From Octopus sinensis (lineage: Eukaryota), in contig NC_043004.1 of assembly GCF_006345805.1 (NCBI RefSeq), positions 58,652,001 to 58,716,000 on the forward strand: 64,000 nucleotides of DNA, in the 5' to 3' direction. This document shows, one piece after another, positions 1 to 5,749 of the stretch; the stretch's first letter is position 1; each line of letters opens with the position of its first letter. Position numbers and translations under genes: made by a program. The notes below the pieces were generated by a model. The model had not been told where the DNA came from. It searched no databases and saw only the letters and a program-made list of their open reading frames with translations.

Positions 1-88
1 AGATGCACCAAAAAAACTATACTGTTTTAACAATACAGTAATGTGGGGTGATTATAAGCGAGAAAGAAGCAACAAGAATGGATAGGTT

Positions 89-178
89 TTTTAGTACAAT
101 CGTTTCATACAAGGACAGGCTTTATTAAAAGTTGTAAAATTACAGCATATAAACGTGTCCCGTACTCATCAGCTAAAA
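89..178 (-). ncRNA. Type I hammerhead ribozyme (PLE 3' terminus), left arm
   Basis: Mirror of 5491-5581: TTTTAG-CTGATGA-stem II-GAAAC-GATT-GTA-CTAAAA on the minus strand. Confidence 0.8.
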
Positions 179-1626
179 TACATGTGAGTTCTCTAGACAT
201 CCCCAGTGGTTGAGGCTATACTCATGAAGTAATGTAGATAATTAAGTAACATAAACAGATTTCCAAAGTTCATTAAAGTTCTTTAAAAGATGATGTACAG
301 TCTTATCACAGAATTTTAAAAAAGTTCTAATAGCATCACAGAGAAGGTGACCTAATCCATAGAGCACATATGAATTTCCAGAGATATGATGAGGGATTAC
401 ATACTCACAGAGACAAATTTATCCATTGTTAATCACAACGAGGTGGGTCCAATTCCTGCTTATTAGCATTACAGAGAGGGTGAATTAATCCTTGTATAGA
501 TACACAATTTCCAATGGTGTAGATGTAAGTTTCCAGAGAAATGAAGAGGAATTTCATATTCACAGGCGATAAATTTATCAATGGTTGAACACATGAGGTA
601 GGTATCAATTCTTGTTATATGATTAGGTATTTGCCACATTAATCACATTACTGCTATTTACAAGAGGCTGTAGCTATTTAACTTATAAAGGCTGAAGGGC
701 TTCGGAGAGGCCAAGAATAGAAAGGGAAGGGAATAGAAGAAAGAGAGAAAATAAGGGAGGAGGGAGCAAAAAAGGGGGGGGAAGGGGACTAAAGAGAAGA
801 GAAAAGGAAAAAGAGAATAAGAAGAAGAAACAGAAAAAAGAGAAAAGAGAAAGAAATAGGGAAAGAAGGGAAAAATATAAAAATAAAAAAGAGGGTTCTA
901 GTTATCCAGAAGAATTAGTAGACGGCAAGTCTGGTTTTAATTTACAGGCATCTATGAACTAGAGGAGAATATTATTCTTTGGCCAGTAAAACATTAATTT
1001 ATTGCTGTTGAAATCAGCTATGAATTTAAAGAGAGATCTAAAGAGATACACAGTCAGGGGTTTAGGGTCAGATGCTAAATCAAAAGAAAATACATTAGGA
1101 AAATCTAAGTATAATCTTATCAAAAGTCAATAAAACTTACTTATTTAATTTATTCATTTTATTGTCTTAAGGAGTTGCCGTTATTATTCATACATTGACG
1201 GGCTACAGGTCAAATCTTAGAAGATCATTTACAAGGTGTTAGGGGATTGTCTATCATAATGAAGATAATCATATTATCACCGAGGGGGTAGCCTTATTTA
1301 TTTAATTTTGAAATAGAATTATGGGGCTATAGTATCTCATTTTATTTTATTAGAGTTATGCTACTTAAATTAGATTAAGTTAGGAATTAAAATTAAAAAT
1401 TACAATTAAGATTTAAAATTGAATTTAAAAGATTATGAGTTTGAAATTAGGTAAGGCCTCAATTAAGCAGCGTATAAGTACTATTCATTTCCCTGTTCCC
1501 TAAAAACTGATGCAGATATAAGGAAAAAGATAACTGTGGTGTGAGAACTCTTAGTTATCTACTTAAAGCAGTGCTATACTAGTAGAAATCAAGTTATATC
1601 TATCTATCTAGTTACGGATATTCTAA

Positions 1627-2840
1627 TCATTTAAAATATTTTAAAGTCTTCAATTTAGCGTGGACACAAACTTGACCTAGTTCGATATGATTATTCAAGT
1701 TTCTATGTTTTCTATGCTTTAGAATTTCATACGTCTCCATGGAGCATAGTTGGCAACCAACCTTACTATTTTTATACGGAATTGCTCTCCTAACTATTTC
1801 CCAATTAAGGTTTAATTTTTATATTATTTTTGAGTTCCCATTTTTTGTTTGAAAGTGTGGTGGTACCAGCTTTATGACGTAAGTTAAAAGACGAGATGTG
1901 ATTTCTAACTCTGGCTAGAAAATTAATTGTACATCCAACGTAAAGATATTTGTTATTCTCCGTGGATATGGTACATTTATAGATTACATTATTTCCCACA
2001 TAGACCAGGTGCCGGGCATTTTGATTTTATTCTACACTTACACACAGGAGGAGCAACTTCAGGCTTTGGATTATTCTTGGGTAGATGTCTTAGGTTCCTA
2101 TTATTTTGATTATCATTTCTATATTTTGGTGCTGATATCTAAAGTATTGCTATTATTTATTGATCCTTCAGCTTCATCATTTAGGTTTAAAGTCCTACCA
2201 TGATTTCTATATTATTGGTAATGTTACTATTATTGTTAGTCTTTTTTCCGACTGCATATTGCTGTTATAAATATCACTGATATTTTCATTCTCCTTATTT
2301 TCTCCATTAGCCTTATATCTATTATTTCTATTATTAACATTATTACTTCTATTAATATCGGCATTGTTATTATTACTATTAATGTTAATGTTATTAGTCA
2401 TTCTGTGGTTACTAATTTCACCTATGTTTTGATAGTTGCTATTGTTGTTTTTTATTGTTGGTAGTATTATTATAATTGCTATTGGTATTCATGCTGATAT
2501 TATTATTTTTATTTCTATCTTTCCTGGCTATTTAATGTTTTTTATTATTAATCTTAGCTATTAAAGTGGACATATTTGGGAGGGTTGAATAAGAAATCCT
2601 AACTGTTTTCCTAGATATAATTCTATGATATCTATGAGAGATAGGGAAATTTTTTTCCAGAATTACTTTGAATTTGTTCTGTATATCCGATTGTATCGCA
2701 CAGTTGAAAGGGATATTCAGCCATAATATATCTTTTTTATTAAATTTAGGGTTCGTAGAATTACTACTATTCATCTCACCGGAGTTATTGTATTTATTAC
2801 CATTATTTTTATTTTTATTTTTATTTTTATTTTTGTGCAT
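1627..2840 (-). pseudogene. Mirror copy of the PLE GIY-YIG ORF remnant
   Basis: ORF-track pieces 2532-2999, 2207-2401 and 1805-1999 match the right-arm peptides; indels lie at different positions. Confidence 0.8.
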
Positions 2841-2844
2841 TAAG

Positions 2845-4044
2845 ATGCACAAAAATAAAAATAATGGTAATAAATACAATAACTCCGGTGAGATGAATAG
2901 TAGTAATTCTACGAACCCTAAATTTAATAAAAAAGATATATTATGGCTGAATATCCCTTTCAACTGTGCGATACAATCGGATATACAGAACAAATTCAAA
3001 GTAATTCTGGAAAAAAATTTCCCTATCTCTCATAGATATCATAGAATTATATCTAGGAAAACAGTTAGGATTTCTTATTCAACCCTCCCAAATATGTCCA
3101 CTTTAATAGCTAAGATTAATAATAAAAACATTAAACTAGCCAGGAAAGATAGAAATAAAAATAATAATATCAGCATGAATACCAATAGCAATTATAATAA
3201 TACTACCAACATAAAAACAACAATAGCAACTATCAAAACATAGGTGAAATTAGTAACCACAGAATGACTAATAACATTAACATTAATAGTAATAATAACA
3301 ATGCCGATATTAATAGAAGTAATAATGTTAATAATAGAAATAATAGATATAAGGCTAATGGAGAAAATAAGGAGAATGAAAATATCAGTGATATTTATAA
3401 CAGCAATATGCAGTCGGAAAAAAAGACTAACAATAATAGTACATTACCAATAATATAAGAAATCATGGTAGGACTTTAAACCTAAATGATGAAGCTGAAG
3501 GATCAATAAATAATAGCAATACTTTAGATATCAGCACCAACTATAGAAATGATAATCAAAATAATAGGAACCTAAGACATCTACCCAAGAATAATCCAAA
3601 GCCTGAAGTTGCTCCTCCTGTGTGTAAGTGTAGAATAAAATCAAAATGCCCGGCACCTGGTCTATGTGGGGAAAATAATGTAATCTATAAATGTACCATA
3701 TCCACGGAGAATAACAAATATCTTTACGTTGGATGTACAATTAATTTTCTAGCCAGAGTTAGAAATCACATCTCGTCTTTTAACTTACGTCATAAAGCTG
3801 GTACCACCACACTTTCAAACAAAATCTGGGAACTCAAAAATAATAATAAAAATTATAACCTTAATTGGAAATAGTTAGGAGAGCAATTCCGTATAAAAAT
3901 AGTAAGGTTGGTTGCCAACTATGCTCCATGGAGACGTATGAAATTCTAAAGCATAGAAAACATAGAAACTTATTGAATAATCATATCGAACTAGGTCAAG
4001 TTTGTGTCCACGCTAAATTGAAGACTTTAAAATATTTTAAATGA
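2845..4044 (+). pseudogene. PLE ORF C-terminal part: thumb/linker, Asn-rich spacer, Cys motif, GIY-YIG endonuclease (three 1-nt frameshifts in this arm)
   Basis: DILWLNIPFN...KNFPISHRYHRIISRKTVRISYSTLPNM; CxCx5Cx5C; VIYKC...YVGCT...RVRNH; then IVRRAIPYKNSKVGCQLCSMETYEIL...LLN...CVH to TGA at 4042-4044. Confidence 0.85.
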
Positions 4045-5052
4045 TTAGAATATCCGTAATAGATAGATAGATATAACTTGATTCTACTAGTATAGCACTG
4101 CTTAAGTAGAAACTAAGAGTTCTCACACCACAGTTATCTTTTTCCTTATATCTGCATCAGTTTTTAGGGAACAGGGAAATGAATAGTACTTATACGCTGC
4201 TTAATTGAGGCCTTACCTAATTTCAAACTCATAATCTTTAAATTCTTAATTTTAAATCTTAATTGTAATTTTTAATTTTAATTCCTAACTAATCTAATTT
4301 AAGTAGCATAACTCTAATAAAATAAAATGAGATACTATAGCCCCATAATTCTATTTCAAAATTAAATAAATAAGGCTACCCCCTCGGTGATAATATGATT
4401 ATCTTCATTATGATAGACAATCCCCTAACACCTTGTAAATGATCTTCTAAGATTTGACCTGTAGCCCGTCAATGTATGAATAATAACGGCAACTCCTTAA
4501 GACAATAAAATGAATAAATTAAATAAGTAAGTTTTATTGACTTTTTGATAAGATTATACTTAGATTTTCCTAATGTATTTTCTTTTGATTTTAGCATCTG
4601 ACCCTAAACCCCTGACTGGTTATCTCTTTAGATTCTCTTTAAATTCATAGCTGATTTCAACAGCAATAAATAACTGTTTTACTGGCCAAAGAATAATATT
4701 CTCCTCTAGTTCATAGATGCCTGTAAATTAAAACCAGACTTGCCGTCTACTAATTCTTCTGGATAACTAGAACCCTCTTTTTATTTTTATATTTTTCCCT
4801 TCTTTCCCTATTTCTTTCTCTTCTCTTTTTTCTGTTTCTTCTTCTTCTTATTCTCTTTTCCTTTTCTCTTCTCTTTTAGTCCCCTTCCCCCCCCTTTTTT
4901 TGCTCCCTCCTCCTTATTTTTCTCTTTTCTTCTATTCCCTCCCTTTCTATTCTTGGCCTCTCCAGAAGGCCCTTCAGCCTTTATAAGTTAAATAGCTACA
5001 GCCTCTTGTAAATAGCAGTAATGTGATTAATGTGGCAAATACCTAATATTAA

Positions 5053-5345
5053 CAAGAATTGATACCTACCTCATTGTGTTCAACCATTGATAAATTTATC
5101 GCCTGTGAATATGAAATTCCTCTTCATTTCTCTGGAAACTTACATCTACACCATTGGAAATTGTGTATCTATACAAAGGATTAATTCACCCTCTCTGTAA
5201 TGCTAATAAGCAGGAATTGAGACCCACCTCGTTGTGATTAACAATGGATAAATTTGTCTTCTGTGAGTATGTAATCCCTCATCATATCTCTGGAAATTCA
5301 TATGTGCTCTATGGATTAGGTCACCTTCTCTGTGATGCTATTAGA
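5053..5345 (+). repeat. Diverged ~158/135-bp tandem duplication in the PLE 3' region (mirrored at ~325-620)
   Basis: CAAGAATTGATACCTACCTC...TGTAATGCTAATAAG followed by CAGGAATTGAGACCCACCTC...TGTGATGCTATTAG. Confidence 0.7.
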
Positions 5346-5490
5346 ACTTTTTTAAAATTCTGTGATAAGACTGTACATCATCTTTAAAGAACTTTAATGA
5401 ACTTTGGAAATCTGTTTATGTTACTTAATTATCTACATTACTTCATGAGTATAGCCTCAACCACTAGGATGTCTAGAGAACTCACATGTA

Positions 5491-5581
5491 TTTTAGCTGA
5501 TGAGTACGGGACACGTTTATATGCTGTAATTTTTACAACTTTTAATAAAGCCTGTCCTTGTATGAAACGATTGTACTAAAA
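5491..5581 (+). ncRNA. Type I hammerhead ribozyme (PLE 3' terminus), right arm
   Basis: Stem I TTTTAG/CTAAAA; core CTGATGA 5497-5503; stem II GTACGGGAC/GTCCTTGTAT; GAAAC 5564-5568; minimal stem III with GATT loop; GTA cleavage triplet 5573-5575. Confidence 0.82.
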
Positions 5582-5611
5582 ACCTATCCATTCTTGTTGC
5601 TTCTTTCTCGC

Positions 5612-5749
5612 TTATATATATATATATATATATATATATATATATATATATATATATATATATATATATATATATAATATATATATATATATATACATAT
5701 ATATATATATATATATATATATATATATATATATATATATATATATATA
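5612..5749. repeat. (TA)n microsatellite
   Basis: Direct reading. Confidence 0.95.

Follow-up and report, generated by a model that had tools for sequence, protein, structure and literature searches.

The window analysed here is a 64-kb stretch of the Octopus sinensis genome (G000:C8, positions 58,652,001-58,716,000), and the locus under study lies at its left edge, at 58.65 Mb of a 107-Mb contig in a 2.72-Gb assembly. The locus consists of two copies of a Penelope-like element (PLE) joined head to head, which together form an inverted repeat of about 5.6 kb with arms of about 2.8 kb. Window positions ~53-2840 are the reverse complement of 2841-5616, and an inverted-repeat search of the window returned a chain of co-linear reverse-complement blocks spanning ~55 to 5615. 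A 2.8-kb arm pair of such quality has no possibility of a chance origin. The fold-back that a first-pass annotation of the letters had placed at 55-5615 is present in the assembly; it sits mid-contig, and no runs of N occur in the window (58 kb rightward of the locus) or in the 7 kb upstream. No second kilobase-scale near-perfect palindrome was found elsewhere in the 64-kb window.

Positions within the element are given in the coordinates of a 4,593-nt unit, numbered U1-U4593 on the genomic copy L037. Read from left to right, the locus is composed of a (TA)n/(TATG)n tract of about 250 nt, the reverse complement of U1-U121, the reverse complement of U1816-U4593, the junction, U1812-U4593, and a (TA)n tract of about 135 nt. 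The left, inverted arm (53-2840, minus strand) is a 5'-truncated PLE copy that runs from ~U1816, with its head ATGCAC at 2840, to U4593. The right, direct arm (2841-5616, plus strand) is likewise 5'-truncated and runs from ~U1812, where it opens with TAAG, to U4593. The first-pass annotation had both arms stopping at the same element 3' end, with unique sequence on the left and (TA)n on the right. On the right this was correct, the end ...CGCTTATA having no tail and merging into the (TA)n target microsatellite at 5617-5749. The left arm, however, continues beyond ...CGCTTATA via 121 nt of element sequence (U1-U121), which in full-length copies is the sequence 3' of the pseudo-long terminal repeat (pseudo-LTR), and only then meets (TA)n. 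The supposedly unique flank at window positions 1-52 is the first 52 nt of this tail (U1-U52, minus strand), and 15 family composites have the same tail at one end. The remaining 69 nt of the tail and the ~250-nt (TA)n/(TATG)n target tract lie directly left of the window (G000:C8:58651693-58652000), and both outer flanks of the locus are TA microsatellite.

The two heads are joined between 2840 and 2841, in the apex GTGCAT/TAAGATGCAC (2835-2850), whose context reads ...ATTTTT GTGCAT TAAG ATGCAC AAAAAT..., just as it had been read before. There is no filler and no microhomology at the join (0 nt each), and each apex base is element sequence, so that nothing foreign lies there, in agreement with the earlier remark that nothing adapter-like is present. 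TAAG had been taken for a free 4-nt loop, but since the other family copies all read AAACC-TAAG-ATGCAC at the break point, these bases are the templated first 4 nt of the right arm. Beside the apex, the arms differ in the number of hexamer units, as had already been noticed: the left arm carries (AAAAAT)5 (2805-2834, minus strand, read as ATTTTT) and the right arm (AAAAAT)2 (2851-2862, plus strand). In the family this repeat has three units (ACAAAT plus two; AAAAAT three times in the closest copy), and therefore both arms deviate from their source, the right by the loss of one unit and the left by the gain of two.

The likeness of the two arms was then measured. A global alignment of the halves gave 2761 matches, 17 mismatches and about 50 small gaps. 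Events private to one arm were counted pairwise and projected onto the closest other copy, L007; substitution counts from a multiple alignment were dropped, being inflated by shifts around private indels. By projection onto L007, the right arm has no private substitution and the left arm 3-4. Private indels number 20 in the right arm and 28 in the left; they are mostly of 1 nt, biased towards deletion and often located in homopolymers. With about 4.5 private indels in L007, each arm thus carries 4-6 times more than other copies, and random pairs of other family copies are a median of 11.5 indel events apart. Shorter inverted arms at other loci show no such excess. One substitution and one deletion are common to both arms and absent from all other copies. 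Over its last 900 nt, the left arm has its own partner as best match, with 1 substitution against at least 3 for any other copy (29 copies), a test that is underpowered at most of the other loci; the similarity of L007 to either arm is about that between the arms themselves. The excess of private indels looks like unpolished long-read consensus error, mostly not biological. Poor polishing is expected because short reads cannot be uniquely placed on two near-identical 2.8-kb arms, and true kilobase-scale palindromes such as this one stay unpolished in long-read assemblies. Errors of the reverse transcriptase (RT) are a less likely source, other RT-made copies of the family having 4-6 times fewer indels. 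The scattered differences reported earlier are real in so far as small indels are many, but they would be mostly consensus-error-like rather than biological divergence, and on substitutions we read the arms as essentially identical sisters.

With the right arm as a genome query, at least 40 copies were found, at 91-99% identity. Nearly all of these matches began at query position 7. The possibility that the arm is the full-length unit was nevertheless rejected: this common start is a query-edge artefact, and the upstream flanks of the copies are homologous over at least 1.5 kb, which extends the unit by 1.8 kb. The full unit is about 4.6 kb (4,593 nt) with a 296-nt pseudo-LTR, a direct copy of the last ~230-800 nt preceding the unit in the full-length copies L037, L036, L038 and L039. 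Upstream of the pseudo-LTR, full-length copies usually have an inverted piece that includes the tail. Both arms of the locus are truncated at their 5' ends (~U1812-U1816), as the first-pass annotation held, and are without a pseudo-LTR there.

The open reading frame (ORF) of the unit encodes about 930 aa and is frameshifted in most copies. It contains the RT motifs FDINSYYSSI, IPMGSSDSAEV and LYRDDALFV (YRDD), together with ...IRRIRWKTYHF... (RWK) and ...VPADKTGN... (PADKTGN, with DKT for DKG). RWK and DKT are invariant or nearly so in family alignments of 28 and 40 sequences. The right arm retains the C-terminal ~400 codons of this ORF, frameshifted (2841-4041, plus strand), with an LWLNIPFN block (2941-2964), an Asn-rich insert (~3200-3620) of about 165 aa between RT and endonuclease (EN), a CxCX5C linker (CKCRIKSKC, 3623-3649), a GIY-YIG core (VIYKCT, YLYVGCT, RVRNH; 3680-3769), CxxC (CQLC, 3913-3924) and CxH (CVH, 4003-4011), all on the plus strand. 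The Cys/His columns of CKCRIKSKC, CxxC and CxH are kept in relatives; the absence of CCHH was judged by eye only. A non-coding 3' region of about 1.57 kb follows (4042-5616, plus strand); in full-length copies, the pseudo-LTR is made of its last ~296 nt. On the minus strand, the left arm mirrors this arrangement, with an ORF remnant at 1633-2840 (CxCX5C at 2016-2042, GIY-YIG core at 1898-1987) and a non-coding 3' region at 53-1632.

Searched against a local Pfam copy, the ORF pieces of the element itself matched neither RVT_1 nor GIY-YIG, and PDB sequence and profile searches with the element ORF gave no match either. The domains were reached through relatives, 451 of which were found in a large protein collection. 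The best named ones come from Solemya, Argonauta and Octopus sinensis (57-69% identity), a sea cucumber and a sea anemone; one relative is named 'Reverse transcriptase domain-containing', and precomputed GIY-YIG matches are present among them. The AlphaFold model of relative P0004, which is 37% identical to the element protein, has a mean predicted local distance difference test score (pLDDT) of 87 and a predicted template modelling score (pTM) of 0.85. Its best PDB match is the telomerase TERT, followed by retron, DRT, group II intron, LINE-1 and R2 RTs, and on this predicted model the RT is of the TERT-related type. The C-terminal stretch CKCRIKSKC...VIYKCT...YLYVGCT...RVRNH aligns with a stretch of P0001 that passes Pfam GIY-YIG (26.2 bits, cutoff 22.6), and GIY-YIG was reached independently by 4 of 40 relatives. 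Since an RT with a C-terminal GIY-YIG domain is the architecture of endonuclease-bearing PLEs, the element is a PLE with endonuclease, and the earlier naming of the arms as Penelope-like is confirmed by RT and GIY-YIG, pseudo-LTR and one-end tail alike. Several gene models derived from such elements are misnamed (P0001, P0003, P0009, P0042), under the misleading names 'GATA zinc finger domain-containing protein 14-like', 'probable serine/threonine-protein kinase DDB_G0283337' and 'putative ankyrin repeat protein'; the Asn-rich PLE ORF thus passes for host genes in public annotation. The Solemya model P0001 is a tandem element annotated as one gene, because the same PLE segments occur in it twice.

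On the published diagnostic motifs (PMC8557442) and the (TA)n target, the element is assigned by its sequence to the Hydra clade of PLEs. It shares with the described Hydra elements RWK, DKT for DKG, the CxCX5C linker ahead of GIY-YIG, CxxC and CxH around a conserved E/N, insertion into (TA)n, a pseudo-LTR, an inverted 5'-truncated partner, a tail at one end, and aquatic invertebrate hosts that include molluscs (PMC8557442). The octopus unit is larger (4.6 kb versus <3 kb) and its tail longer (121 nt versus 30-40 nt), and the Asn-rich insert between RT and EN is absent from the published Hydra description (PMC8557442), although it is known in rotifer Penelope elements (PMC3846280). Hammerhead ribozymes, 'readily detected' in the described Hydra families (PMC8557442), were not detected here: no Rfam match to this motif was obtained at E<=1 in window positions 1-6000 and two full-length copies, the only hits being spurious microRNA matches to (TA)n. 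A lone CUGAUGA box in the pseudo-LTR region (5497-5503, plus strand; 166-172, minus strand) has no GAAA partner within 60 nt and could be left over from a ribozyme, either decayed or non-canonical. A hammerhead is not required for membership, since Naiad and Chlamys PLEs are likewise without one. The element is a new, young octopod family within a known PLE clade; its copies are 97-99% alike, and it may still be active in the cephalopod genome.

With Penelope/Poseidon elements, the octopus family shares the head-to-head inverted arrangement, the optional tail on one inverted end, Asn-rich inserts between RT and EN, and palindromes at the inverted junction (PMC3846280); in 2013 such palindromic inverted junctions prompted the hypothesis of PLE self-priming (PMC3846280). 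The inverted piece in Penelope/Poseidon is usually a pseudo-LTR of ~200 bp, whereas here it is a 2.9-kb arm ending 4 nt from the start of its partner, and, unlike in Penelope/Poseidon, no target-site duplication is readable in the (TA)n target (PMC3846280). The inverted layout, one-sided tail, (TA)n target and Asn-rich insert are all documented PLE traits. What is new at the locus is an unusually long, equal-armed inverted example, and not a new kind of element.

We then compared the locus with its family, annotating 35 loci in unit coordinates. Of 27 loci that could be resolved, about 19 have an inverted arm next to the 5' end of the main copy. The inner end of the inverted arm varies from U85 to U4565, while its 3' end is always kept. 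For 14 composites both outer ends were examined, and in every case both lie in (TA)n, which also flanks most single copies. The junctions show either microhomology of 0-21 nt or short fillers copied again from neighbouring sequence, as is typical of template switching by a polymerase; such stutter fillers occur at L010 437-450, L011 1127-1133, L029 679-684 and L037 2147-2161 (reverse complement). The 121-nt tail stands on exactly one outer end in 15 of 15 composites with both ends visible, the 5.6-kb locus included. If ends were independent (p=0.5), the chance of this would be about 3e-5. Such a constant single tail means that the ends of an insertion are coupled to each other. Of the 15 composites, 8 bear the tail on the shorter, inverted arm and 7 on the longer, direct arm, and both alternative termini end in (G/T)TATA beside (TA)n. 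Only at the 5.6-kb locus do the arms start 4 nt apart; elsewhere the inner ends differ by 43 nt (L036) to thousands.

Other long head-to-head pairs exist with unequal arms. In L008 (G000:C12:79519053-79524838), a left-pointing copy that starts in the pseudo-LTR at U4380 meets a right-pointing copy from U1749, and in L031 (G000:C1:5159788-5165542) an inverted arm to U85 meets a direct arm from U1106. Some direct arms nearly share their 5' truncation, at U1448/1449 (L011/L024), U1000/1002 (L012/L029) and U1410/1415 (L030/L032), and some inverted arms share inner ends (U4154/4157, U4380/4385). These shared truncation points suggest pause or switch hot spots, but are not statistically convincing in this sample. 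L034 and L035 (G000:C5:61959912-61966965) have the same orientation, lie 4.3 kb apart and have 65 derived sites in common, and are therefore a local duplication or long tandem rather than independent insertions.

The explanation that we favour, and in which our confidence is about even, is that the locus arose by one retrotransposition of a young Hydra-clade PLE into (TA)n, in which both target strands primed complementary DNA (cDNA) and a template switch joined the two cDNAs. That a single event took place, in keeping with the first-pass annotation, is the best reading, because the heads abut without (TA)n between them, the flanks are (TA)n, private variants are shared and each arm has its partner as best match. 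The GIY-YIG nuclease of the element would first cut both strands of the (TA)n target. Each target 3' end would then serve as primer for reverse transcription of element RNA, which offers two UAUA-type sites separated by 121 nt, the site ...CGCUUAUA (U4593) giving the right arm without tail and the site ...UUUUUGUAUA (U121) the left arm with its tail. The two cDNAs would end at U1812 and U1816, only 4 nt apart and just past the slippery (AAAAAU)3 run, where repeat units would have been gained and lost. Finally, one polymerase would leave the RNA for the 3' end of the cDNA made by the other, joining the arms without filler. If a single RNA molecule served both primers, each event would naturally leave exactly one tail, and the model of priming on both strands fits all 15 composites, the 5.6-kb locus among them.

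In the twin priming of human LINE-1, which gives inversion/5'-truncation products, two target 3' ends prime on one RNA and the inverted join shows microhomology. The octopus locus would resemble it in having two primed cDNAs joined in inverted orientation. The second LINE-1 primer, however, anneals internally and the two segments are different and non-overlapping, whereas the octopus arms both contain the 3' 2.8 kb, a template region that was therefore copied twice. Priming on both strands also agrees with the reconstituted Anolis PLE (PMC11167929). The purified protein of this element, PAc, cleaves and extends both target strands and is predicted to form a dimer, and its reverse transcription starts internally, 111-118 nt past the pseudo-LTR junction (PMC11167929). 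PAc and the octopus element have in common an AT-rich target of which both strands are cleaved and extended in the Anolis system, and the internal start of PAc ~110-120 nt beyond the junction parallels the 121-nt octopus tail. They belong to different clades (Penelope/Poseidon for PAc, Hydra for the octopus element), and the PAc initiation site is an AC-rich stem-loop without target homology, whereas both octopus termini are UAUA, matching a (TA)n primer (PMC11167929). The PAc study characterised no inverted products (PMC11167929).

Several points weigh against this origin by priming on both strands. Two independently growing cDNAs that end 4 nt apart need a cause. Both enzymes may have paused or dissociated at a site after the A-rich repeat, the RNA may have had its 5' end there for both, or the trailing enzyme may have caught up with a stalled leader. 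At about 20 other family junctions the inner ends are tens to thousands of nt apart, and equal arms are rare; the clustering of truncation points is suggestive, not significant. The orientation of the 4-nt centre could be miscalled in a near-perfect palindrome with a noisy long-read consensus, and the structure rests on a single assembly. A more specific version, which we put forward tentatively and consider doubtful as a whole, is that a dimeric RT-EN cuts both (TA)n strands, that a single RNA molecule pairs with both 3' ends through its two UAUA sites, 121 nt apart, and is copied in tandem, and that a jump of one polymerase onto the cDNA of the other closes the structure. The locus would then be the limiting case, in which the trailing enzyme came within 4 nt of the leader, and the equal-armed dimer and the one-tail rule would record the core of PLE integration.

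The first-pass annotation had instead proposed that first-strand cDNA primed and copied itself. The right-arm cDNA would have stopped at TAAG, folded on a 4-nt loop and been filled in as a hairpin to give two arms. Such a course would account for the near-identity of the arms and for an apex that matches a minimal hairpin, with no filler, a templated 4-nt centre and the right polarity on the right-arm cDNA strand, and self-priming has already been proposed for palindromic PLE junctions (PMC3846280). A copy must, however, be a subset of its template, and each arm holds sequence that the other is without: the left arm has the 121-nt tail, the right arm the 5' TAAG, and taking the left arm as template gives TAAG the wrong polarity. 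The 7 of 15 composites with the tail on the longer arm are compatible with copy-back captured early at the TATA of U4593, but no copy-back scheme yields the 8 with the tail on the shorter arm. Self-priming could be rescued here by a later exact deletion of the right-arm tail or by a flip of the 4-nt centre, and we consider it unlikely. A palindrome that was inherited, or made at the DNA level, is a far more remote prospect. It would have come from a palindromic read-through transcript of an older head-to-head locus that was retrotransposed, or from an inverted duplication by replication template switching after insertion. Bidirectional promoter motifs have been suggested for PLE pseudo-LTRs (PMC3846280), and head-to-head loci able to give such transcripts are common in the genome; yet the search for further equal-length inverted arms, which the annotation had recommended, found none among the best 40 genomic matches, so that an inherited palindrome lacks an equal-armed sibling there. 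A duplication at the DNA level would have mirrored flanking DNA too, which is not the case, and against both variants the outer ends are two canonical element termini in (TA)n.

That the palindrome is an assembly artefact, a chimeric fold-back long read with a missed adapter having created it or bridged two genomic copies, is in our view improbable, although the concern raised by the first-pass annotation is reduced rather than fully removed. Exact symmetry around a tiny centre resembles fold-back reads, and the 20 and 28 private indels against ~4.5 mark a poorly polished stretch; this excess is, however, expected anyway for a true near-perfect palindrome. The assembly holds no second haplotig, the unique left flank being single in it, and no corroborating empty site: candidates were paralogs of the older right-flank repeat without the left flank. 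On the other hand, a fold-back read would be mirrored up to the read end, whereas the symmetry here stops at the element boundaries, beyond which the outer termini differ (tail versus none) and the flanks are unrelated. These termini also follow the one-tail rule, as a misjoin would do half the time. The 18-nt difference in hexamer number by the apex is unexpected if the arms were the two strands of a single molecule; the locus lies within a gap-free part of the 107-Mb contig, and other kilobase-scale palindromes are lacking in the window. A bridge between unrelated copies is unlikely, as private variants are shared and the arms are each other's best match. The same shared variants speak against two independent insertions in opposite orientations into one (TA)n tract, which we regard as hardly credible. 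The family does target (TA)n strongly, and L007 resembles either arm about as closely as the arms resemble one another, but no target nucleotide lies between the abutting heads, both arms are truncated within 4 nt, and the one-tail rule implies a coupled origin of the ends.

The mechanism of PLE integration, including the tandem or inverted copies and the one-sided tail, has been described as still undefined (PMC8557442). The inverted layout is itself normal for the family, and it is the equal-arm break-off that bears on how PLEs integrate. Because the tail is on the shorter arm in about half of the cases, inverted arms cannot in general be snap-back copies. A further constraint is that both alternative termini end in UAUA, matching a (TA)n primer. 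Together, the locus and the one-tail rule argue against snap-back and for priming on both strands, and these constraints fit the biochemistry of a PLE protein that extends both target strands.

Beyond the (TA)n tracts, both flanks contain repeats. On the left (L040 6190-6430), a ~80% repeat found at many sites is included. The right flank at window positions 5813-6400 is an older interspersed repeat with longer relatives at 80-86% identity, and its ~350 nt at 6050-6400, which resemble a short interspersed element (SINE), occur at more than 30 genomic sites at 93%.

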